A stretch of DNA of 64,000 bases from Calcarisporiella thermophila CBS 279.70 (GCF_041956535.1 NW_027192196.1:1100752-1164751), one strand, 5' to 3'. Counted from the stretch's first letter, positions 13,268-62,407 are shown. Notes: generated from the sequence alone by a model not told the origin. Program-made: numbers and translations.

Positions 13268-15614
13268 ATGGGCCATTTGATAACGGTTGCATCTTGTGTT
13301 CTTAATCAATGGGCCCTAGATTTCGAGGGCAATCTCCAGCGCATCATTGCAAGCATCCGTGAGGCCAAACGCCGTGGGGCACGTTTAAGGGTTGGCCCGG
13401 AATTGGAGGTGACGGGGTATGGATGCTATGATCATTTTTTAGAGGGCGACACGTACCTGCATTCGTGGGAGATGTTGGCCAATATTCTAAATGATGAAGA
13501 ATGTAATGACATTCTTTTGGATATCGGGATGTAAGTTATATATTGGTTAATGTCACCCTCTCAAAGATTGGTCATTGTATTAAACTTTGTTTGTGGATAT
13601 CTTTATTTTTGGGTTTTTGCAGGCCTATCATGCACAAAAATGTCAAGTATAATTGCCGCGTTCTTATCCTCAATCGCAAGATTCTTCTAATTCGGCCCAA
13701 GATGTTCCTGGCCAACGACGGAAACTACCGCGAACTACGCTGGTTCACTCCGTGGTGTAAACCTCGCACTGTTGAAGAATACTACCTGCCAAGAATGATT
13801 CGCGATATTACCGGTCAGGTGGGTGATACATGCTTGTGCTTTCGGTAGTAGATCTTTGGGCTCGATTTCTTAATATATTTGAATTTACTGCCAGGCAACA
13901 GTTCCTTTTGGTGACGCGATTATATCTGCGAAAGATACGGTTATTGGAGTAGAGCTTTGCGAAGAGCTGTTTACACCTAACAGCCCTCACATTGGAATGG
14001 GCCTTGATGGGGTAGAAATTTTTACCAATAGTAGCGGCAGTCATCACGAGTTGCGCAAACTCAATAGGCGCATTGATCTGATAAAAGACGCGACGCAGAA
14101 GGTGGGCTCATACTTAGGAGATAGTCATACTAGAAATCAACTTGAATACCCTCTATTGCATGTAGGTTGGTGGCGTGTACTTATATGCAAATCAGCAAGG
14201 ATGCGATGGGGACCGACTTTACTATGATGGGTGTGCCCTAGTTGCGGTCAATGGTCAAATAGTAGCGCAAGGATCGCAATTCTCTCTACAAGATGTCGAG
14301 GTGGCTACAGCCACGATTGACATAGAAGATGTACGATCTTATCGTGGTGCGATGACTAGTCGCTGCATTCAAGCTGCACAAACACCAGCATACCCTCGTA
14401 TCAGTATAGACTTCGCACTTTCAAGCGCTGCGCTTGACTCGCAAATCCACGTACGCCCTGATAAACCTCGGGCTGCATTTTACCACACCCCTGAAGAAGA
14501 AATTGCACTAGGTCCTGCGTGTTGGCTTTGGGACTATCTGAGAAGAAGTAAAACTGCGGGATTCTTCCTGCCACTCAGCGGTGGGATCGATTCATGTGCA
14601 ACAGCAACCATCGTGTGCTCTATGACAAGGCTGGTCGCTGAGGCTGCAAAGCAGGGAAATCAACAGATCATTCGCGATGCGCGTCGCATAGTAGGTGAAA
14701 AAGAAGACTCAGACTATCTCCCCACGGACCCAAGGGAGTTTGCGGGTCGAATATTCCACACTTGTTACATGGGCACCGAGAATTCGAGCCGCGAGACGAG
14801 GGACCGCGCTAAGCGACTGGCCGATGCTATCGGGAGCCATCATACAGATCTGAACATGGACACTGCAGTACGCGCAGTTCATACTGTCTTCTCACTGGCC
14901 ACTGGCAAAACGCCGCGCTTCCGCGTGCACGGGGGAACTAATGCGGAAAACTTGGCGATGCAAAACGTGCAGGCTCGGCTACGCATGGTCCTTGCCTACC
15001 TCTTTGCGCAGTTACTTCCGTGGGTGCGCGGACGAGCGGGGGGTCTGCTGGTGCTTGGAAGTGCCAATGTGGACGAAAGTTTAAGAGGTTATTTGACCAA
15101 ATACGACTGCTCCAGTGCCGACATCAACCCCATTGGTGCGATTAGCAAGGCGGATCTACGCCGATTTATCGCCTATGCGCATCAAAAATTTGATATCGCG
15201 GTGCTCGAGGAGTTCTTGAGTGCAACACCGACCGCTGAGCTCGAGCCTATCACTCAAAACTACGTTCAATCTGATGAGGCGGATATGGGAATGACTTACG
15301 ACGAGCTTTCCATCTTTGGCCGACTTCGCAAGGTGGAGCGCTGTGGCCCTTTCGCGATGTTCTCACGGCTCGTCCACGAATGGGGTGACCATCTTCGGCC
15401 TGCGCAAGTGGCCGAGAAAGTCAAACGATTCTTCTACTATTATGCCATCAATCGTCATAAATTGACGACATTAACCCCGAGCTACCATGCAGAGTCCTAC
15501 AGCCCCGACGATAATCGATTCGACCTGCGACCTTTCTTGTATAACGCCGCATTCAATTGGCAGTTCCGGAGGATCGATGCCGCAGCAGAGGCACTGGAAA
15601 AGGTGAACAAATGA
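13268..15614 (+). CDS. QNS1: Glutamine-dependent NAD+ synthetase (4 exons)
   Basis: [91 protein letters not shown]. Confidence 0.97.
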
Positions 15615-16381: not shown

Positions 16382-17956
16382 CTAGTTGGTATGCGTCTGT
16401 TTCGGCTTATCGGCAAAAGCCTTGCTAGGTTCAGCTTTTCTATCTCCAGTCTCAGCTGGTTTCCAAGTGTCCCTCGTCTGATCTGGCTTATCGGTGGATT
16501 TCGGCATTGCTTGGGAAACAGTTGGTTTTACAGTAGCATGTGGAGTTTCTACTGATTTTGAAGAGGTAGACTTTTCAGTATATTTGACCTCCTCAGTGGA
16601 GCTAGGAATCTGGGAGGACTTGGGACGAAGAAACGAGTTGATACCCTGAGCATCTATATCAGATACGTCCAATTCCATACGAACATTCTTTTGCTTATAT
16701 GGGATATTGAAAACATAATTGCCAATCTGGGCGGTAATTACCGAATCAATATCCACATCTATACCACTAGGATAGTTGTTTAAGATATCTATTAATGTCT
16801 CTTCGCTGGCGGTTATTATTGTAGCCAGCTTGTTGAAGGCTTTCTCCTGCCTTTGAGGGACGAGAAAGTTGGAGCTATGATCGATTTCTAGGAGAGGGTT
16901 GTTCTTAAACTGAAGTTTTGCCTTAACGTGTGAAACGATAATATCGGTGTCGAGAGGGTTGAAGAGCGAAAAAGTACTATTAGTTTTCCTATAGACAACG
17001 GCATCTAAGCTAAAAACACAACGGGAGCTCCTAATCATTTCATCTTTCACACCCACCACGGTGGCAGGTACTTTGAGAGAAGCAAACGACGGCTTAATGG
17101 ATTCAATAGGGGTCGACTCGCTAGTTCCGACTACGGCCACATTTGAGTTCTGACCCGCAAGGAACGCTTCGAGTACTTCGACTCCAGCTCCATCTCCATT
17201 GGGGTTAATAGCGAGTCGTCCAGAGACAGGATTGGCTCCACGTTTAATGCTAAGATCCTTGAGTGCAAGGCTGCCAATCTTCTTATCCTGATATTGTACA
17301 TCGAACGAAACATCACCAGCATGGATGGCAATATCTGAGGGGTTCTGGAGGGTGGAGGTCACATCAACTTGGATGCCATCCTTAGTGCCACCAACGACCT
17401 TAAACTGTTCGAACTTGAGAGGCACAGATGTCAGCCCATTCATTCCCTTGAGATTCACGTCGTTTCCGAATGGAACCCCCTTAAAGGCTTGTTCGCCAGT
17501 AGAAGTCTTAGTAACAACATCAGAGGTGCCGTGCAAGTTGATGGTAGCCTGCGCCTGTGTAGTGAGGGTCTTGAGCAGTTCTTGGATTTGAGCATGTTTG
17601 TCTGCTGCTTCTTGCAGTGGAAGATCGGCGAACTTGAAAGTAAGCTGACCATTGCCAGAGCTTGCTGGAGCACCCTCAGGGATGGAGAGGGTTGCAATGT
17701 CGTCATTTCCGTACTTGATGATAGCATTTGACAAATACTTCAGAATTGTAGCATCCCCATCGGTGGTGTATTTCACAGTAAGAGAGTCGGAAGTAGAGAG
17801 AGGAGAGTAAGGATCACCTTTTGTGAAGTCGAGGTCGATGGATTTGAGCTCAACGCCATTGATGGTGAATCCATCGGCAGGCTTCTCAACGGGAGCACCC
17901 CGGCAGGTTGCCACAAGAGCCAAGGCGATGGCAATAGAAGGGATCGAAAGCTTCAT
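16382..17956 (-). CDS. Secreted DUF3712/Tag1-like protein, paralog 1 (524 aa, intronless)
   Basis: Signal peptide MKLSIPSIAIALALVATCRG; beta-rich repeats with LKGMNGL, LQNPSDI and FNPL motifs collinear with the large protein at 26340-31233; S/T/P/K-rich tail. Confidence 0.8.
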   Translation of the reverse strand: MKLSIPSIAIALALVATCRGAPVEKPADGFTINGVELKSIDLDFTKGDPYSPLSTSDSLTVKYTTDGDATILKYLSNAIIKYGNDDIATLSIPEGAPASSGNGQLTFKFADLPLQEAADKHAQIQELLKTLTTQAQATINLHGTSDVVTKTSTGEQAFKGVPFGNDVNLKGMNGLTSVPLKFEQFKVVGGTKDGIQVDVTSTLQNPSDIAIHAGDVSFDVQYQDKKIGSLALKDLSIKRGANPVSGRLAINPNGDGAGVEVLEAFLAGQNSNVAVVGTSESTPIESIKPSFASLKVPATVVGVKDEMIRSSRCVFSLDAVVYRKTNSTFSLFNPLDTDIIVSHVKAKLQFKNNPLLEIDHSSNFLVPQRQEKAFNKLATIITASEETLIDILNNYPSGIDVDIDSVITAQIGNYVFNIPYKQKNVRMELDVSDIDAQGINSFLRPKSSQIPSSTEEVKYTEKSTSSKSVETPHATVKPTVSQAMPKSTDKPDQTRDTWKPAETGDRKAEPSKAFADKPKQTHTN

Positions 17957-18097
17957 TGTAGGGTGTCAATGATAGTGAGAAAGAGCAAAACTATATAAGG
18001 AATGGAGATAATAATAATGAGAAAGGAGAAAAGGAATCTAAAAATTAAATAAAGAGTAGAAAAAACAATAAGAGAGTCAATATATAATATAAAAGAA

Positions 18098-18710
18098 GAG
18101 CTCTGCGTATCTCCTTTTATATTATTTTCCCTTCACTTCCCTACCATCAGAGTTCATTCGTACTTCCGGGGCTACCCCAGAATTGTTGTGGAACTGCGTT
18201 GGTTGGTAGCCATGTGTAGAGGACATATTTCACCGCTGCTTCTAACTAAATATTAAAGTTATATCGTGTATCATGGAGTTGGAATAAGCCGAGCATCCTC
18301 GGATGTGAAAGTTGCACTGGAGCAGCAACTCAAAGCTACACGAACAAGCAATTCCACCGGATTAATAGTATAGTAAACGGTGACGAGAGCAGACAAATAA
18401 GATCTGAGACTACTCCTCATTTCATATTAGCATAGCGTTGCTGAATGCATGACAGTGTTACCCATCATCCCACTGATCTAGATTTCTAAGTCAAGGTCGA
18501 ACTCTTTAGATAACCTTGGCCAAGTTCATAGCTTCACTCCGGTTTGGTAGGCAAAGGTGGAGTGAATTAAACTTTCTCATTGAATATTCGCCCGTGTTAT
18601 CATAGTTTATCCTCGCACTATCATGTCTTCCGGGTTCTTGTGCAGTATTCAGAGTTGAAGTTCAATGTATGCTTAGAATAAAGATTAACCTACTTCGAAC
18701 CATATATGCA
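18098..18710. repeat. Upstream region of paralog 1, a diverged direct copy of 20621-21240
   Basis: Collinear similarity with identical blocks such as CAAGCAATTCCACCGGATTAATA (18345-18367 and 20889-20911), TTGGAATAAGC and CATCCTCGGAT. Confidence 0.8.
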
Positions 18711-19268
18711 ATCTATTTTATTGAAGATACACCCATATGATTGAATGCCATAATGCGTGATTGAGGGTTTAGAGTAATTTTATAAATTTAAAAAAATTTG
18801 CGACAAGTTCCATTTTTGTCAAAAAAAAAAAGCAAGTTACTTGAGGGACTTCACTTCCTAGGCACCCATATTATGAAGAGAAGAAATTTTTAGTGTCCCG
18901 AAGCCATGGCCCCAATGACTACATTATAAAATTGAATAGTACGAAAAAATGTTTGAGATATTCTACAATCCAGTACATTTTCTACTTAATTCCTTAAACT
19001 CAATGACGGTTATTCAGACTCAACAGTATTGCTTTTTCTCTATTATCGTTTTTATTTGGTTTAAATTTAACAGTGAAGAATTCATCAGATTAAGAGGTGG
19101 ATTGGTAGCTATTGGTCAAAATATTGTTCATATAAATAGAAGAAGGTATATTATAATAGTTAAAATGAATGGCAATACAAGAAGCTAAAGGTAGAGTGTA
19201 GTCAGACAGATAAAGGAGCGCTATAACAAGATAACTTTGGATCGGCTTTCAAGTATCCATCTCATCTA

Positions 19269-20109
19269 TTAAATGTTAAATGTCTGCTTTGGCTCTTCAA
19301 CGATTGATGTGGTAGGATTAGGCTTCTTGTTTTCAGTCTCGACAAACTTCACTGTACTCTTTGTCTGATTCTTGGTCTCAACAGGATTTTCAGTGGATTT
19401 TGAGTTCTCCTGGGAAACAGATGGCTTTTTAGTGGTGTGTGAAGTTTCCACTGACATTGAAGGGGTGGGACTATCAATTGATTTGGATATCTCAGTGGAG
19501 CTGGGAAATTGAGAAGAGTTGGAGGGAAGAAGCCCCTTCATTCCTTGGGCTTTTAGTTTTAAGTCAAACTCGATGGACACATTATTCTGCTTGTACGGGA
19601 TATTGACAACATAATCGCCAACTTTGATGGTAATAACTGAATCGATATCAAATCTATATGAATAATCGAAATTTTTAAGAAAATCTCCGAGGTTCTCATC
19701 GCTGGCAGTAATTGTGCTAGCAAGCTCGTTAATAATTTTCTCCTGTCCATGGGGAATGAGAATGTTGGTGTCTTGGTTGACCTCGAGGAAAGGGTTATTC
19801 TTAAATGCGATATTTATCTTCAAGTGTGTCACCGTAATATCGGTATCAAGAGGGTTAAAAAGCGAATAAGTAGTCTTGGTTTTCTTATATGCTATGGCAT
19901 TTATGCTCAAATCACATCGAGGGTTCCGGATCAACTTATCTTTAACACCCGTCACCGTGGCAATTGCCTGGAGTGAAGTAAACGATGGTTTAAGTGATTC
20001 AATGGGGGTCGATTCGCTAGTTCCGACTACGGCTACGCTTGAAGTCTGGCCTCCGAAGTACGCCTCGAGTATTTCGGCTCCAGCTGAGGCTCCATCTCCA
20101 CTTGGGCTG
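19269..20109 (-). CDS. Secreted DUF3712/Tag1-like protein, paralog 2 (3' half; 5' half lies in the gap)
   Basis: Open from the gap edge (SPSGDGASAGAEILEAYFGGQTSSVAVVGTSESTPIESLKPSF..GVKDKLIR) and aligns with the C-half of paralog 1. Confidence 0.8.
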
Positions 20110-20620
20110 NNNNNNNNNNNNNNNNNNNNNNNNNNNNNNNNNNNNNNNNNNNNNNNNNNNNNNNNNNNNNNNNNNNNNNNNNNNNNNNNNNNNNNNNNNN
20201 NNNNNNNNNNNNNNNNNNNNNNNNNNNNNNNNNNNNNNNNNNNNNNNNNNNNNNNNNNNNNNNNNNNNNNNNNNNNNNNNNNNNNNNNNNNNNNNNNNNN
20301 NNNNNNNNNNNNNNNNNNNNNNNNNNNNNNNNNNNNNNNNNNNNNNNNNNNNNNNNNNNNNNNNNNNNNNNNNNNNNNNNNNNNNNNNNNNNNNNNNNNN
20401 NNNNNNNNNNNNNNNNNNNNNNNNNNNNNNNNNNNNNNNNNNNNNNNNNNNNNNNNNNNNNNNNNNNNNNNNNNNNNNNNNNNNNNNNNNNNNNNNNNNN
20501 NNNNNNNNNNNNNNNNNNNNNNNNNNNNNNNNNNNNNNNNNNNNNNNNNNNNNNNNNNNNNNNNNNNNNNNNNNNNNNNNNNNNNNNNNNNNNNNNNNNN
20601 NNNNNNNNNNNNNNNNNNNN

Positions 20621-20785
20621 GAACTCTGTGCGTCTCCTTTTATAAATATTTATCCTCGCTTTTCTGGAATGATCAGAGTTTATTTGTATTTCGGTGGTCA
20701 CCCCAGATTATGGTGGAACGGCGCTTGTAGGCTGCACGATGTGAAGGACCTATTTCGTCGCTACCCCTCCATCTTGGAAACGGCT
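20621..20785. repeat. Left arm of a perfect inverted repeat (at least 165 bp, runs into the gap)
   Basis: Exact reverse complement of 21406-21570. Confidence 0.95.
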
Positions 20786-21405
20786 AAACTTCTATGATAA
20801 ATAGTGTTGTGTGCCACGGATTTTGGAATAAGCGGAACATCCTCGGATTTGATTGTCGTACTGAAATTTTAAATCTAAACTGCGTAAGCAAGCAATTCCA
20901 CCGGATTAATATGAAGAGTAAAGTAAATCAAAAACTCCAGCTATAGCTTTGCTCCTCCTTTCCCTTGCAGTCTAACATGATAGAATGCTTGACAGCGTTA
21001 CCTATCTTATTGAGCCATAATTTAAGTCTGGACTTAACTCTTCAAATAAATTGATCAAGGCCTTATTTCTCTACAGCTTGGTAAACTTAGATGAAAGAGT
21101 GTAGATTGATATGAACTTTTTCATTAAATTTTCCTCTTGTTACCTGTTACCACCTAAGTATCACATCTTTTGAATTCTTGTGCAATAATCAGAATTGAAG
21201 CTGAATATTTGCTTAGAACTATGATAACAACGCTACAATATATATATACGAACTATATTGAAGATATAACCATGTGAAAGAATAACGCAATCCATAAAAG
21301 CGGGTTTGAACAGATGTAGATGTTTGCCGCATAACTGTTTTTCACAATATATTGAAGATATATAGTATTTAAGATCAAAAATATAGAAGAAAGGAAGAGA
21401 GTGTG

Positions 21406-21570
21406 AGCCGTTTCCAAGATGGAGGGGTAGCGACGAAATAGGTCCTTCACATCGTGCAGCCTACAAGCGCCGTTCCACCATAATCTGGGGTGACCACCGA
21501 AATACAAATAAACTCTGATCATTCCAGAAAAGCGAGGATAAATATTTATAAAAGGAGACGCACAGAGTTC
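21406..21570. repeat. Right arm of the perfect inverted repeat (proximal promoter of paralog 3)
   Basis: Exact reverse complement of 20621-20785; contains TATAAAAG at 21547-21554. Confidence 0.95.
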
Positions 21571-21708
21571 TTTTTTTTTTTATTCGACTCTTTGATCGTT
21601 TTTCTTCTCTTTATTTTACTTTCGATTCTGTTTCTCCTTTCTCATTTTTATTATTCCCATTCCTTTTATAGCTCTGCTCCTGTCTCTGATTATCATTGAT
21701 AGCCTATA

Positions 21709-23984
21709 ATGAAATTCTCGCTCCCCTCTATTGCCATCGCATTGGTTCTTGTGGCGACCTGCCGGGGTGCTCCCGTTGAGAAACGCGCCGAAGGGTTTAC
21801 TATCAATGGTGTTGAGCTCAAGTCCATCGATCTCGACTTCACAAAAGGTGACCCTTACTCTCCTCTCTCCGCTTCCGACACCCTTACTGTGAAATACACC
21901 GCCGATGGGGATGCTGCCGTTCTGAAGTACTTGTCAAATGCTATCATCAAGTATGGAAATGACGACATTGCAACCCTCTCCATCCCTGAGGGTGCTCCAG
22001 CAAGCTCCGGCAATGGTCAGCTTACCTTCAAGTTTGCCGACCTTCCACTGCAAGGAGCAGCAGACAAACATGCTCAAATCCAAGAACTACTCAAGACCCT
22101 CACTACTCAAAATCAGGCTACCATCAACTTGCACGGCACCTCTGATGTTGTTGCTAAGACTTCTGCTGGCGAACAAGCCTTTAAGGGAGTTCCATTCGGA
22201 AACGATGTGACTCTCAAGGGAATGGGTGGGCTGGCGTCTGCGCCTCTCAAGTTCGAACAGTTTAAGGTCGTTGGTGGCACTAAGGATGGCATCCAAGTCG
22301 ATGTGACCTCCACCCTCCAGAACCCCTCAGATATTGCCATCCATGCTGGTGATGTTTCGTTTGATGTACAATATCAGGATAAGAAGATAGGCAGCCTTGC
22401 ACTCAAGGATCTTAACATTAAACGTGGAGCCAATCCCGTTTCTGGACGACTCATTATNNNNNNNNNNNNNNNNNNNNNNNNNNNNNNNNNNNNNNNNNNN
22501 NNNNNNNNNNNNNNNNNNNNNNNNNNNNNNNNNNNNNNNNNNNNNNNNNNNNNNNNNNNNNNNNNNNNNNNNNNNNNNNNNNNNNNNNNNNNNNNNNNNN
22601 NNNNNNNNNNNNNNNNNNNNNNNNNNNNNNNNNNNNNNNNNNNNNNNNNNNNNNNNNNNNNNNNNNNNNNNNNNNNNNNNNNNNNNNNNNNNNNNNNNNN
22701 NNNNNNNNNNNNNNNNNNNNNNNNNNNNNNNNNNNNNNNNNNNNNNNNNNNNNNNNNNNNNNNNNNNNNNNNNNNNNNNNNNNNNNNNNNNNNNNNNNNN
22801 NNNNNNNNNNNNNNNNNNNNNNNNNNNNNNNNNNNNNNNNNNNNNNNNNNNNNNNNNNNNNNNNNNNNNNNNNNNNNNNNNNNNNNNNNNNNNNNNNNNN
22901 NNNNNNNNNNNNNNNNNNNNNNNNNNNNNNNNNNNNNNNNNNNNNNNNNNNNNNNNNNNNNNNNNNNNNNNNNNNNNNNNNNNNNNNNNNNNNNNNNNNN
23001 NNNNNNNNNNNNNNNNNNNNNNNNNNNNNNNNNNNNNNNNNNNNNNNNNNNNNNNNNNNNNNNNNNNNNNNNNNNNNNNNNNNNNNNNNNNNNNNNNNNN
23101 NNNNNNNNNNNNNNNNNNNNNNNNNNNNNNNNNNNNNNNNNNNNAACCCCAGCGAGAATGGAGCCGGAGTCGAAGTACTCGAGGCATTCCTTGAGGGTCA
23201 AGACTCAAATGTGGCCATAATTGGAACTAGTGGGTCGACCCCCATTGATTCACTTAAGCCGTCGTTTGCTTCTCTCAAAGTACTTGCTAACGTGGCGGGC
23301 GTGAAAGATAAATTGATCCGAGGATCGAGATGGGGAGTGAATATAATTGATGTCATACTTCACAAAAAGTCCTCTTGGAATTTTGCAATTTTCAACCCTC
23401 TCGGCATTGATATCACTATCAATCACATAAAATCTACTATCTCGCACAAGGGTATAAAATTGGGTGAGATCGATCAAGATACTAACATGATTGTTCCTCA
23501 AAGCCAAGATAAAGTCACCGAAATGCTTGCTCTTAAATGTACTGCCACAGATGAGGAATATGTTGATATTTTTAGGGACCCTTCTGACCCATTCAATGTC
23601 GATATCGATTCGGATTTCACAATCAAGATTGGTGCTTATGTTGTCACCATTCCACACAGGCAAAAGAATGTGTTTACTGAACTATTTGTACCCGACCTCA
23701 AAGCACAAGGGATAAATTCACTTCTTCCTGTCAAGTCCTCCAAAATGCCAAGCTCGATTATTGCATCCATGTCAACCGAAATGCTCACTCCCTCAAAATC
23801 AGTGGAGATTCCGCATATCACCACAAAACCATCTATTTCCTATGAAAACCCAAAATCCACTGGATACCCTGCTGAGACAAAAAATCAGACAAAGAGTACC
23901 ACGAAACTAGCCGAGACTGAGGATGGGAAGCCTAACCCTACCAAATCAATCGTCGAAGTGCCAAAGGAAATACACGACATTTGA
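21709..23984 (+). CDS. Secreted DUF3712/Tag1-like protein, paralog 3 (interrupted by an N-gap that is probably ~1 bp in reality)
   Basis: Signal peptide followed by APVEKR; N-half nearly identical to paralog 1; gap flanks ..GRLI / NPSENGAGVEVL are directly contiguous in paralog 1 (GRLAINPNGDGAGVEVL). Confidence 0.82.
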
Positions 23985-26339: not shown

Positions 26340-29300
26340 ATGGATTCAGAGCGAGATCTAGCCGAAAATGTGCGGCATCACGTCGCTCAAGATGAGAATG
26401 ATGCAACCTATTTCGACGAGAAGACTTACTCCATACCCACCCCACGCTTCTACAAGACAAGGCGTTTCTGGATAATTTTCGGAGCGGTCACCGCAGTCCT
26501 TCTTGCAATTTTCCTCCCTCTCACATTTCTCGTCTTCATCCCCATGGCTAACCAAAACGTTGTCACCAGCTCCACTATTAATATCAAAGATGCAAATGTC
26601 ACTAGCGGTAAAGACGGATCTATCGGTATGAGCATGAATGCGCAGATTGATAATACCGGTAAATCGATATTATGATAAAACTCGAATGTCATAGCGATAT
26701 AAACGTCCAAACTTTCTAATTTTTCAATAGGTTCTTTTGATGGTGTTATGGAGTTTCCTGAACCCGTAAGAGTGAGCTTTGATGGAAAAGAGTTTGCTCG
26801 ATTTGCCAATGTTCCACCTGTCAATGTCAGTGGGGGAAGCGGTACTTTCTTGTCTAACTCGGCCCTAGAAGTCACCGATCAAGATGCCTTCAAGGAGTTT
26901 ACCAAGAAACTTATCGTTTCCGACAAAGTCAATTGGCATCTCTCCTCCACCGTCTCTCTCAAGGCAGAAGGAAAGGAACCTAAATCAATACCAATGGAGA
27001 AAGATGTTGATATCATTGGTGAGTGTCTATTAAAACTAGAAATGTAGTGAGATGTTAAACGTCATATCTAATTGAATTTATGAAATTTAGGCTATAATGG
27101 ATTGAACAACATCACAATTTCAAGTTTCCAGATGCCGGGTAATGATACACAGGGTGGAATTGGTATGCGATTGTCTGCTGACTTGTTCAGTGAATCGCCG
27201 GTCAGTCTCCTGCTAGGCAATGTGTTGATGAATGTGACCTATAACAACATCAATTTGGGTTCACGTAAGTTATAAAGATTATCACGCGCTATGCTTTTTT
27301 TGACGAGATCGCTCTTTTCATATAGTCCAAATGAACGATCTCTTTGTTCGACAAGGAATGAACGCCTTCAATATCTCTGGAAGCCTTGTACCGCAAGCGA
27401 ATCCAGCGGATCTTGAGCAGGTCGGTGCATTCATGAGCGATATTCTTGCGGGCCGACGTGTTGTGACCACTGCCATTGCAACATCTGCCCCATCCAATCT
27501 AACCAGCAATCAACCTGCCTGGATGACCGATACTATCAACGGTTTACGTATGAATCTTGGGCTCCAGTCACCCAAGCCCCTTGAGATAATCAGCAACATT
27601 ACACTTGATTATATGCGCATGGCCTTCCATCCTGATGAACCTTATGTTCCCACGACTTCTACCGATGCGATTAAGGCGATAGTCACAGTTCCTTTTGGCT
27701 TTACCATTGATATTTCCAAAGTCAGGCAGAATATTACGGTTTCAAAAGATAATATACCGCTGGCGACTATCAACTCTGACTGGGGAAATGCGCACAATGA
27801 TACCAACATTAAGCGTGTTGTTATTTCTCTTCCAGAGTCAGATTTCAAAGTTCTTTCCGGAAAGGAGCAAGACTTCACTGACTTCGTCACTGAGCTTACT
27901 CTAGAAGATGAAGCCGTAGTGAATCTGGCTGGAAATGCTACTGGTATTGCAAAAACTCCCATTGGCGAGGTGACACTGCGTGATCTGCCCTTCAACAGTA
28001 ATATAACGCTCTATGGTCTCCAAGGTCTTAAAAATCCTCCGCCAAAAGTGAATGGTCTCGATGTAGTTGCAGGAACAAAGAAGGGCCTAAAGCTGAAGAT
28101 TGACACCGATCTAGAAAATCCAAGTAATTTAGAGATTGCTATGGGGTCTGATGTAAGGATGGAAATGGTCTACGAGGGCAAAGATCTTTCCGAGGTTGTT
28201 CTCCCAGATTTAACCCTTCAAATCGGCAAGACCAAGGTTAAGGCAGAGTCGATATTTGATCCCAAGGCTTCAAGTGAGGGAATGAAATTGCTCGAATCAT
28301 TCCTTATGGGTGAGGACAACAAGATCTCTATCAAGGGCACAAAGCATGCCACAGATGTAGAGCCATTAAATCCTGGGCTTGAGCAGATTAAAGTCGGCAC
28401 CAAACTACCTGGCCTAGGTGAAAAGCTCCTCAAATCGGCAAAACTTATTATTCTTCCGGAAACCCCCAGGACAAAAGTCGCTAAGAGTATTGTGGAGGTT
28501 AACAATCCATTCTCTGCCACTCTCAATCTTTTCAAAATCAAAGCCCTTATTACCAACTTTGGAATTCCCGTCGGTACCATCAATGTTGAGAAGTCAGGTA
28601 GCGAGATTGAACTTCCTGGTAAAAAGGTCACAGAAACCACTCTCCCATTGACTATGAATATGGAAATATCGGCTATCATTGGTATCCTGCGCAAGAATGC
28701 GATTCGTGCTGGACTCGATGTCAGGCCACTCGATGAACTTTTGAAGCTGGGCGGTATCCCCATTAATGGTGGGGGTAACGATAGGCGTCTTGCCAAACGC
28801 GGCATCTTCGATGGATTCAACATTGTTGAATTCACGAAGAAAGCTCTCGGACACATCAAAGTATACGTAGATATGGAGATCGGAACGCGTATTGATGATT
28901 ATAGCATGTCCATCCACTATGAGCAGACCAATGTCGACGCTTACACTGATGACTCGATCGCTATTCTGATTCCTCTTATTGGACTTCCTATCATTCAAGC
29001 CATCATCAATCGCTCTGTACTTTCGATCGACTTTACGATTATTCAGGATCCAGCAAATAGTAAATTCAAGGCCAAGATGAAAGGAGCTGTAAGAGAAGCC
29101 GGTCCTGTCGATGCTCTCATCCATTTCAACGAGCCACTAAACATCATCTGGAACGGTAAGACTATTGGCGCAGTTACTATGCCAGACCTGAAAGTAGTTG
29201 GCGGACAAGGAGCCGACATCGATCTCGTGGCAGATGTGGCTGTCGTTGACGGCGCAGCGCTTGAGGAGTTCTCCAAGCAGCTTATTGCACAGCCTTCTTT

Positions 29301-31233
29301 CGATTGGGCACTTGAATCGAATAATCTGAGAGTGGACGCAGTGGGTGCCTCGTTTGCAGGCGTTAAAATGCAAAAGAAAGTAACGCTTAAAGGTATGGAT
29401 GGCCTCAAGGAAGGAGCGAAGATCGAAGAATTCAAGATCACGGGTGCGGATGCTGAAGGCCTCATCATTCAGTCCGTTGCTGCGCTACCAAGCCCAAGTG
29501 ATATCGGTCTTACTGCGAAAGTAATGCGATTCAAGCTTTTCTTCCTAAACACTGAGATCGGTTATCTTCTTGCAAATGATCAGGTTCTTCTTCCCGAGGC
29601 AACTAGTCGATTGTCAATGACCGGTCGCCTCAGACCTGGCATCCCAATCGATATCCTTAGCAAGCTCTTTGGAGCTTACCTCACTAATCGGCCAGTTCCA
29701 TTGCAAGTAGTAGGTGAAGAAGCAATTGGTCCTGAGGGGCGAGTTGATTGGCTCTCCAATGCACTTAAGACTCTCAAACTCACGGTCATTCTTAACGGCA
29801 TTGATAAGTTCCAAATGATTAAGGAAATCACGATTCAAGACTTTAAGATGGTATTGGAAAAAGGTAAAACACCACAAGGTTCATCACAACACACTCTTGT
29901 CAAGTATCAAGTACCTTTCCCTATCGAAGTCAACGTCAATCGCCTTTCTCAGAATGTCAATATCGTGTATAATGGAGTCAATGTCACTGGATTTGCTCTT
30001 AAAGATCAACCAGTCACTTCTACGCCTATTCCTGGCGGTGGAACCATTGATTTCAACTGGGCAGCAGAGCTTCCAGTACAGTCGCAGGAAGGATTTAAGG
30101 CGTTTTTAGCCGATGTTACAGCAAAAGATGAAGTACAGTTCCATCTATCTGGCTCTTCTGGAGTACTAGCGACAACCCCATCTGGCCAGCTTATGCTCTC
30201 TCCTATACCAATTGAGGTCGATACAAAGATGAAGGGTCTTGGTGGTCTTAAGAATCCGCCTCCACAACAATCCGGTGAAGTCAAACTCGGAGGAGGAAAA
30301 TTCACATTTAATGGATGTTCTGGAGCCAATGGAGCTAATCTCGGACTTCCTATAACTGTGTATAATCCAAGTTCCATCACCGTAGAGATGGGAGATGTTT
30401 ATTTCAAAACAGAGTGGGACTCTGTCCTTCTCAAAGGAAAATATATCGTTGGTCCAACCATGATTGAAAAGATGAAGCTTCAACCTGGCGCTAATGCTGT
30501 GACTACAAAGTTCTTTATGTGCGGAGTATGGGATTCAAGGATGAATAATATTTCAGTTCAAGCTTCGTTTTTAAGAGAATTTGCGTCTACAGGAGTGCAG
30601 CTTCGTGCCTTCGGTTATAATGATTATCCTGCACATCCATCCACCGATAACCCATTACTCGTTGATGCCATCACTAAGGTGGACTTACCTATCTTAGTCA
30701 AACATCGCGGGCTCAATCTATTGGCACTTAATTTGACCAGCTCTTCCGTCCTCCCAAGTTCCACTGCTAATATATCCTCGACGGTAGCGTCCTCATCAAG
30801 TGGTACTCCTATCCCATCTGTGACTGAGACATCAATTCCACCTACGAGCGACGTGCCAACTTCGCAGCCACAACCATCTAAGCCAACGACAAAGCAAGAG
30901 TCATCAACTACTGAGAAGCCGGAGAAGCCAACTGATGACAAAAAACCGCCAACTCCAACGGAGACTACTACTCCTCCCAAGAATACAACAGATCCCACTC
31001 CCAATAAACCCCCAGCTGACGATAAAGGCAATGGCAAAGAAGGTGGTAAAGAGGGTGGCAGGGACCAAGGCAAAGATGACAAAAACGCTGGAAAAGACAA
31101 AGAAAAAGCGCCAGGAGCTCAAGCTCTGGGTTTTGAGCAAAAAACCTCCTACGCAACGCAAAATTCTTGGTCACAAGCTCTGATGCTCTCTTTCTTCTGT
31201 TCTCTTGTTATGCCTTTCCTCTTGTTTGCTTAG
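26340..31233 (+). CDS. Large multi-repeat DUF3712/Tag1-like membrane protein (4 exons, about 1560 aa)
   Basis: N-terminal TM (FWIIFGAVTAVLLAIFLPLTFLVFI); GT-AG introns at about 26659-26730, 27019-27090 and 27265-27325; repeated LxGxxGL..NPS units; S/T/P stalk; hydrophobic C-terminus. Confidence 0.85.
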
Positions 31234-61731: not shown

Positions 61732-62407
61732 CCCTACAAAAAACCCGTCTGGTGAAAACTGCTAGAAAACGAATAGGAGCATGTAGAAAAGGTGGAGGAG
61801 GTTCGCGATTCCCTATAATTTTTCAACAATTTCACTATAATTTGTAGACTCCTCNNNNNNNNNNNNNNNNNNNNNNNNNNNNNNNNNNNNNNNNNNNNNN
61901 NNNNNNNNNNNNNNNNNNNNNNNNNNNNNNNNNNNNNNNNNNNNNNNNNNNNNNNNNNNNNNNNNNNNNNNNNNNNNNNNNNNNNNNNNNNNNNNNNNNN
62001 NNNNNNNNNNNNNNNNNNNNNNNNNNNNNNNNNNNNNNNNNNNNNNNNNNNNNNNNNNNNNNNNNNNNNNNNNNNNNNNNNNNNNNNNNNNNNNNNNNNN
62101 NNNNNNNNNNNNNNNNNNNNNNNNNNNNNNNNNNNNNNNNNNNNNNNNNNNNNNNNNNNNNNNNNNNNNNNNNNNNNNNNNNNNNNNNNNNNNNNNNNNN
62201 NNNNNNNNNNNNNNNNNNNNNNNNNNNNNNNNNNNNNNNNNNNNNNNNNNNNTTCACTATAATTTGTAGACTCCTCTCCCATTATTAATATCTTGAAAAA
62301 TAGGTGAAAAGTTTGTAAAAATTTAGGGAATCGCGAACCTCCTCCACCTTTTCTACATGCTCCTATACGTTTTCTAGTAGTTTTCACCAGGAGAGTTTTT
62401 TGTAGGG
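61732..62407. mobile_element. Non-autonomous TIR element (MITE/foldback), CACTA/CMC-like
   Basis: About 100-bp imperfect TIRs starting CCCTACAAAAAA and ending TTTTTTGTAGGG; 3-bp target duplication AGC at 61729-61731 and 62408-62410. Confidence 0.8.

Follow-up and report, generated by a model that had tools for sequence, protein, structure and literature searches.

Three related open reading frames (ORFs), here called P1, P2 and P3, lie at 16382-23984 in a 64,000-nucleotide stretch of the genome of the fungus Calcarisporiella thermophila CBS 279.70 (Mucoromycota; GCF_041956535.1, NW_027192196.1:1100752-1164751; hereafter the window, from whose first letter all positions are counted). They probably belong to a lineage-specific family of tandem LEA-2 proteins, in which the pattern of divergence along the genes reflects domain-specific constraint together with repeated, 5′-biased ectopic gene conversion. 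An earlier reading of the same DNA (the sequence-only reading) had placed three ORFs here, and an ORF search found them at those places. It had also described them as a secreted trio with a constant N-terminal half and a hypervariable C-terminal domain, for which a role in recognition, adhesion or effector function under diversifying selection was proposed. The parts of the locus are as follows; the domain assignments are those of the structural model described below.

16382-17956, minus strand: P1, intact and intron-less, 524 codons (ORF search, Pfam, AlphaFold2 model), with a predicted signal peptide (residues 1-20), LEA-2 domains A and B (~21-305), LEA-2 domain C (306-436) and an S/T/P/K-rich tail (437-524)
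17042-17896, minus strand: constrained part of P1, LEA-2 domains A and B, codons 21-305, up to the GVKD hinge (substitution ratio, secondary structure, breakpoint)
16649-17041, minus strand: codons 306-436 of P1, domain C, a LEA-2 sandwich of divergent sequence that corresponds to the 'variable head' of the sequence-only reading
16382-16648, minus strand: P1 tail and stop codon, low-complexity and S/T/P/K/E-rich
17957-18678, minus strand: P1 upstream region (blastn homology to the P3 upstream and P2-side upstream regions)
19269-20108, minus strand: P2 C-part, which starts at the homologue of P1 codon 250 and has 279 open codons and a stop
20110-20620, no strand: assembly gap 1, 511 N, the expected place of the P2 5′ untranslated region (5′UTR) and codons 1-249
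20621-20785, minus strand: readable end of the P2 arm of an inverted repeat, promoter with TATAAAAGG, 165/165 identical to 21406-21570
20786-21405, no strand: unique spacer between the arms, 620 bp, its P2-proximal side homologous to the P1 upstream region
21406-22457, plus strand: P3 arm of the inverted repeat, 1052 nucleotides (nt), with promoter, 5′UTR and codons 1-249 (coding sequence from 21709)
22458-23144, no strand: assembly gap 2, 687 N, which splits P3
23145-23984, plus strand: P3 C-part, 279 open codons and stop, in another frame of the assembly than the P3 N-part

A search of the organism's own genome returned six family members and no further fragment. P1, P2 and P3 form the present cluster (contig C6). 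P4 (C10:57645-59228) is intact and encodes 529 amino acids (aa); P5psi (C3:1219517-1221070) has three in-frame stops and two frameshifts; and P6 (C11:45203-46691) has two short introns (~62-65 nt) in domain C and a much shorter basic tail. All members except P6 are intron-less. In the codon analyses the P6 exons were used separately, the NCBI protein P0001 serving as the spliced product, and P5psi was read with X at its stops.

Divergence and constraint along the genes

P1 and P3 differ at exactly 20 of their first 249 residues, in agreement with the earlier manual count. When these differences were polarised with P4 as outgroup, nine could be assigned to P1 and seven to P3, four being ambiguous, and most were exchanges among T, A and S. 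Nucleotide identity of the coding sequence over codons 1-249 is 92.5%; in 30-codon windows it ranges from 84 to 99% up to codon 300 and from 53 to 67% beyond. A maximum chi-square analysis placed the breakpoint immediately past GVKD, at P1 codon 306 (chi2 224, matched by 0/300 permutations); nt identity is 91% on its left side and 59% on its right. The sharp divergence that had been noted past GVKD is therefore present, aa identity falling there to 41-53%, and the motifs quoted for the trio (RCVFSLDAVVYRK / RCDLSINAIAYKK / RWGVNIIDVILHKK; NNYPSGID / KNFDYSYR / RDPSDPFN) were all found, as were the scaffold residues FNPL, DIDS, IP.KQ.NV and AQG. A constant N-half was found for P1 and P3, but the same could not be said of P2, the N-half of which is unreadable in gap 1. 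A stretch of the form NN.P.GI[DE]VD[IL]DS is common to P1, P4 and P6, so the differences among the trio at this place are peculiarities of P2 and P3 rather than family-wide hypervariability. Of all copies of domain C in the family, that of P3 diverges most, with 39-45% aa identity to all others and 45% to each of P1, P2 and P4.

The strength of selection was estimated by the method of Nei and Gojobori (NG86) with bootstrap, from four-fold degenerate sites, and by maximum likelihood (ML) over all copies with the Goldman-Yang (GY) codon model in IQ-TREE. P1 and P4 form a pair without conversion. Non-synonymous divergence (dN) between them is lowest in the N-half (0.067); for the linker, which is the final third of domain B, it is 0.18, and domain C (0.33) and the tail (0.38) have higher values still, while synonymous sites are saturated throughout (third-position differences 0.51-0.65; synonymous divergence, dS, ~2.1 in the N-half). 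The resulting dN/dS ratio (ω) of ~0.03 for the N-half implies that domains A and B are under very strong purifying selection. Over all copies the ML ω is 0.094 for the N-half, 0.27 for the linker, 0.21 for domain C and 0.49 for the tail, which makes domain C more constrained than the disordered tail; pairwise values for domain C are 0.12-0.40, with saturated dS. The number of residue types per column of domain C is even across secondary-structure classes (2.65 in strands, 2.86 in helices and 2.56 in loops).

The third domain is thus variable in one sense, as it changes its amino acids about five times faster than A and B in the P1-P4 comparison, but it does so below the neutral rate. Diversifying selection on a variable head was not borne out: pairwise and ML values of ω in domain C lie well below 1, dS there is saturated, and the 5′ part carries the marks of conversion described next, which is the combination of results that the sequence-only reading had itself set against its proposal.

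The recent P1-P3 differences in the N-half (21709-22455 against 17210-17956) have an ω of ~0.2, compared with the long-term P1-P4 value of ~0.03. Either relaxed constraint after duplication or an artefact of saturation may account for the raised value.

Synonymous divergence between P1 and P3 depends on the part of the gene. In the N-half dS is 0.20 (bootstrap 0.13-0.29), with 12/113 four-fold sites differing (K4, the distance at these sites, 0.11); in the linker it is 0.36; and in domain C it is saturated (dS >1.3, proportion of synonymous differences, pS, 0.75, K4 0.91). The synonymous distance between the P1 and P3 copies of domain C is the same as the distance to P4 on another contig. Had the two genes been young throughout, 5 x 0.085 = 0.4 substitutions per site would be predicted for domain C, whereas 1.43 were observed. 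Codons 181-240, the core of the similar part, reach 97-99% identity and suggest a sub-tract that is younger still. Upstream of the two genes ~280 nt align by blastn, at only 74% and with indels, which places the start of the conversion tract near the start codon. The homology between the P1 upstream and P2-side upstream regions is longer but older (616 nt, 65%, blastn), as expected for an old tandem duplication, and the 3′ flanks of P2 and P3 share ~95 nt at 74%.

Kinship also appears to change along the gene. The trees, in which the copies encoding P0001 and P0002 were treated as the ingroup members P6 and P5psi, join P1 and P3 in the N-half (support 100/99), while in domain C they join P1 with P2 (88/86) and P4 with P6 (92/90) and leave P3 alone with the longest branch. 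P3 is a mosaic: its 5′ arm equals that of P2 (seen over the 165 readable nt, the rest of the P2 arm being inferred), its linker is nearest P1 (dS 0.36), its domain C is an orphan, and its tail and 3′UTR are nearest P2 (dS 0.72). The pS of P3 domain C (0.74-0.75) exceeds that of its flanks (0.49-0.51; permutation p ~0.003), with the proviso that NG86 may overestimate pS at high dN.

Ectopic gene conversion in inverted repeats or tandem clusters, with 5′-biased tracts, can homogenise paralog pairs. In the history proposed here, domains A and B would be held by very strong purifying selection and domain C and the tail by weak constraint, which would be why domain C changes about five times faster. 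Conversion among the clustered copies would repeatedly have overwritten the 5′ part: an older tract, from about the start codon to codon 306, would join P1 and P3 (dS ~0.2), and a very recent or ongoing tract would keep the P2 and P3 arms identical from the promoter to codon 249 (~1.05 kb). Such exchange would be possible in the N-half because purifying selection holds it at 77-92% nt identity, whereas domain C, at 56-67%, would be too diverged for co-conversion and would thus retain its old, saturated divergence. The locus resembles paralog pairs known to be homogenised in this way in its perfect readable arms around a short spacer, the abrupt drop in identity at the tract edge, the apparent discordance of kinship along the gene and the divergent unconverted segments. 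It differs from them in that conversion is here read from one assembly, and in that constraint changes at a domain border where the tracts also end.

The inverted repeat and its assembly gaps

P2 and P3 stand head to head on an inverted repeat around the 620-bp spacer. The TATA-containing P3 promoter (21406-21570) recurs without mismatch (165/165) as its reverse complement at 20621-20785. Beyond the readable 165 nt, the P2 N-half and 5′UTR fall wholly within gap 1, and what can be read of P2 starts in domain B, of which it includes the final third, and continues through domain C and the tail. Gap 1 would be expected to contain ~887 nt if P2 is complete, against the 511 N estimated, and is thus 376 nt too short.

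Gap 2 errs in the other direction. The contig to its left ends in ...CTCATTAT (longer: ...GGACGACTCATTAT) and the contig to its right begins AACCCC... (AACCCCAGCGAG), while the counterpart of the junction in P1 is GCTATTAACCCC (longer: GGACGACTCGCTATTAACCCCAATGG). Compared with the P1 sequence, the flanks imply that ~1 nt is lacking in gap 2, not 687, an estimate that presumes P3 to be colinear with P1. With ~1 nt in the gap the frame is continuous, reading RLIINPSEN in P3 where P1 has RLAINPNGD; with 687 N taken literally, the N-part and C-part of P3 fall in different frames.

At most 1 nt separates the homologous bases at which the C-part contigs of P2 and P3 begin, a shared break of the kind that a collapsed repeat leaves. 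On the simplest reading, the arm 21406-22457 (~1.05 kb) probably exists twice in the genome, in identical or near-identical form, and was assembled once; no separate contig of the assembly carries a second copy of the arm. It could be argued instead that the assembly has misplaced the C-parts of P2 and P3 around a single N-half, P2 being a 5′-truncated relic and the trio a duo plus a fragment. The lengths of both gaps are estimates, and gap 1 is 376 nt short of a full N-half, as such an artefact would allow. This is nonetheless very improbable, as a second, inverted copy of the promoter (165 nt, 100%) was assembled beside gap 1 on the P2 side, the P2 C-part keeps 279 open codons with an ω of ~0.3, and the C-part contigs of both genes stop at one and the same homologous base, which would be expected where a two-copy repeat has its boundary.

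An invertible promoter switch was also considered and rejected as superfluous: each arm has its own TATA-containing promoter, so flipping the 620-bp spacer would not redirect transcription.

The locus serves as a worked example of how a short-read assembly may be interrupted at two homologous points by a perfect inverted repeat, and of how the lengths of N-gaps can mislead, 687 N standing for ~1 base and 511 N for ~890. A third assembly gap (61855-62252, 398 N) lies in the window outside the trio.

Protein fold, predicted export and family

The DUF3712 units proposed from the sequence were recovered by Pfam: PF12505 matched P1 with 50.1 bits (E-value 4e-13) and the P3 N-part with 50.0 bits, over residues 100-220 and against a cutoff of 24.1. 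The LEA_2 family (PF03168, cutoff 25.4) fell just below its cutoff in P1 (25.2 bits, residues 202-233, domain B) and reached 20.9 bits in the P3 N-part. No significant Pfam match was found in domain C, where LEA_2 scored 14.6 bits in P3 (E 0.046), and the P2 C-part had no Pfam match at all.

An AlphaFold2 model of P1 residues 21-445, made from an 11-sequence alignment, had a mean predicted local distance difference test (pLDDT) score of 84.6 and a predicted template modelling (pTM) score of 0.74. It consists of three beta-sandwiches in a row, and in each of them a single helix (model residues 101-113, 237-246 and 365-374) precedes the final two strands; the GVKD hinge (P1 303-306) is the border of domains B and C. 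Domain C modelled alone had the same order of elements (pLDDT 77.7). When it was compared with the PDB by Foldseek, the best match was the luminal domain of TMEM106B (8b7d, E 4e-6), followed by 3but (3.6e-5) and 1xo8 (template modelling, TM, score 0.52), with the lipid-binding sandwiches UNC119 and PDE-delta as second-tier neighbours. These LEA-2 structures (archaeal Af_0446 3BUT, Arabidopsis LEA14 1XO8 and TMEM106B 8B7D) are the top matches of domain C, yet identity to them is 12-14% and TM 0.44-0.52. The full three-domain model gave generic tandem Ig-like matches alone (integrin legs and the like; TM <0.25).

DUF3712 has been described as an out-of-register view of tandem LEA-2 domains, and the LEA-2 domain as having an N-p-N turn after strand 2 and a proposed hydrophobic groove (Levine 2021, 10.1101/2021.03.12.435176). 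The present proteins resemble the fungal DUF3712/Tag1-like proteins of that study in their gapless tandem of LEA-2 domains, the DUF3712 model running from strand 4 of one domain to strand 3 of the next. They are also alike in the N-P-x-D Asx-turn after strand 2, which reads FNPLDTD in domain C and LQNPSDIA in domain B. N34 of the domain C alignment is invariant, and all copies of domain C except that of the C3 pseudogene keep open frames and the LEA-2 scaffold. The ESM Atlas contains the P1 sequence letter for letter. It lies there among DUF3712 clusters of Mucoromycota and Ascomycota that share its three-domain fold (TM 0.78-0.91), and the Mucoromycota DUF3712 proteins of 430-500 aa in these clusters share the same overall fold within that range.

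The N-terminus, as read from the sequence, resembles a signal peptide: MK, a 15-residue hydrophobic core and CRG|AP. A Kex2-like dibasic site lies five to six residues past the predicted cleavage (17876-17896 of the window, and homologues elsewhere), reading EKR in P3, P4 and P5psi, KR in P6 and EKP in P1 only. The tail, comprising the last 85-90 residues, is rich in S, T, P, K and E, with a pLDDT below 50 at its start; it is hydrophilic to the end and thus has no glycosylphosphatidylinositol (GPI) signal. The predicted layout of each copy is a signal peptide, a short propeptide that ends in EKR in most copies, three tandem LEA-2 domains and a disordered tail. This sets the C. thermophila copies apart from Tag1 and most described members, which are type II membrane proteins with a lumenal LEA-2 array, whereas in the copies described here the signal peptide looks cleavable, a Kex2-like EKR site is present and the long tail is disordered.

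The NCBI C. thermophila proteins P0001 and P0002 are identical or near-identical to the C11 and C3 copies; P6 is P0001, and P5psi is annotated as P0002 (VTP21DRAFT_7390), a 457-aa protein whose gene model splices around the defects. P4 differs strongly in composition from the C6 copies within the same genome (GC content 0.59, and 0.75 at third codon positions, GC3, against a GC3 of 0.42-0.50 in the cluster), and its tail contains EKPS/EKPK repeats.

About a dozen more distant DUF3712 loci (18-31% identity) are found elsewhere in the genome, including a large Tag1/DUF3712-like gene adjoining the trio at 26340-31233, which comprises a 1309-aa ORF and, at 26340-26675, a membrane anchor at the N-terminus. 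This gene is 24-30% identical to P1, no closer than the large members on C3 and C33 (28-30%), and is therefore not an evident source of the putatively secreted paralogs. On the other side of the trio lies a presumed housekeeping neighbour, an ORF of 479 aa (14175-15614) that resembles the C-terminal part of glutamine-dependent NAD+ synthetase, with a short exon-like ORF ahead of it (13997-14227).

A word-based search with the whole protein and with residues 25-440 found no close relative outside the species, returning, besides two proteins encoded in this very genome, a single chytrid protein at 26%; as a word search only, this is a weak negative. The six-copy family has so far been seen in C. 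thermophila alone, which is a weak indication that it is lineage-specific. The literature search found nothing on this family in Calcarisporiella. The DUF3712/LEA-2 family and the evolutionary mechanism are of known kinds; this subfamily is not known to have been described before, and the locus by itself discloses no new biological principle.

Rival readings of domain C and the proposed function

Several points weigh against the combination of constraint and conversion proposed above. An approximately unbiased (AU) test on domain C gave p 0.08 for a P1+P3 clade and so did not formally reject it. The fast tail shows a younger P2-P3 kinship (dS 0.72) than domain C does, leaving the domain C of P3 as an old island between younger flanks, a pattern that selection against homogenisation would also give. 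In the P2-P3 comparison the contrast between domain C and its flanks at four-fold sites was not significant (11/19 against 22/57), being underpowered at 19-32 sites. The values of ω are domain averages over six saturated sequences, with which a few positively selected sites would be compatible. Finally, the P2 N-half is unread, and its presumed identity to the P3 arm is drawn from the behaviour of the assembly.

An island of this kind would be expected if domain C were a head for ligand or target recognition, with A and B as its constant scaffold, and if its differences from copy to copy were maintained either by diversifying selection or by selection that opposes homogenisation. Such a head would fit the fivefold faster change of domain C relative to A and B in the unconverted pair P1-P4, the position of P3 domain C as a saturated island between younger flanks on both sides (p 0.003), the open frames and LEA-2 scaffold kept in all copies but the C3 pseudogene, and the ligand-binding sandwiches UNC119 and PDE-delta among the second-tier structural neighbours. 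It is nevertheless unlikely. The ω of domain C (0.12-0.40 pairwise, 0.21 by ML) lies below the 0.49 of the disordered tail, the variation is not concentrated in loops, the supposedly variable NN.P.GID motif is common to P1, P4 and P6, and there are six copies only, one of them a pseudogene. Moreover, conversion would halt at domain C anyway, at 56-67% nt identity, and passive arrest explains most of the pattern. It is quite unlikely, too, that domain C acts as a specificity cassette, conversion keeping the promoter and the two-domain scaffold uniform while selection blocks homogenisation of the third LEA-2 domain; if this were true, the fungus would secrete a small panel of LEA-2 proteins with differing ligand or target specificities. 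To our knowledge, such a role is undescribed for DUF3712/LEA-2 proteins. The mosaic structure of P3, the equal distance of its domain C (45% aa) from P1, P2 and P4, and its place as the longest branch of the domain C tree could also mean that P3 is a recombinant whose domain C was imported from a more distant family member by domain or cassette exchange. No donor copy was found in the assembly, however, and conversion of both flanks that spared domain C would leave P3 with the same mosaic; such an import is highly improbable.

Constraint and 5′-biased conversion are therefore retained as the probable explanation of the pattern. As to function, the favoured view, held with about even confidence, is of soluble proteins with an array of LEA-2 domains, which enter the secretory pathway and whose probable destination is the wall or medium. 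Domains A and B would carry the conserved function, the binding of a hydrophobic or lipid ligand, and domain C and the tail would be accessory parts under loose constraint, which either drifted or became sub-functionalised. The binding of such a ligand by the LEA-2 domains is suggested by analogy with what has been proposed for the superfamily, and secretion rather than lumenal retention is likewise presumed; the chief alternative to release is a destination in the lumen (vacuole), as for Tag1 and Vac7.

These observations imply that 5′ conversion and domain-specific constraint can together mimic the design of a constant scaffold with a hypervariable head. DUF3712/LEA-2 proteins are widespread in fungi, and we know of none with a tested function. 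A subfamily with a predicted signal peptide and three well-modelled domains, of which two form a constrained pair and the third evolves freely, provides handy natural variants for tests of the binding of lipids and other hydrophobic ligands.

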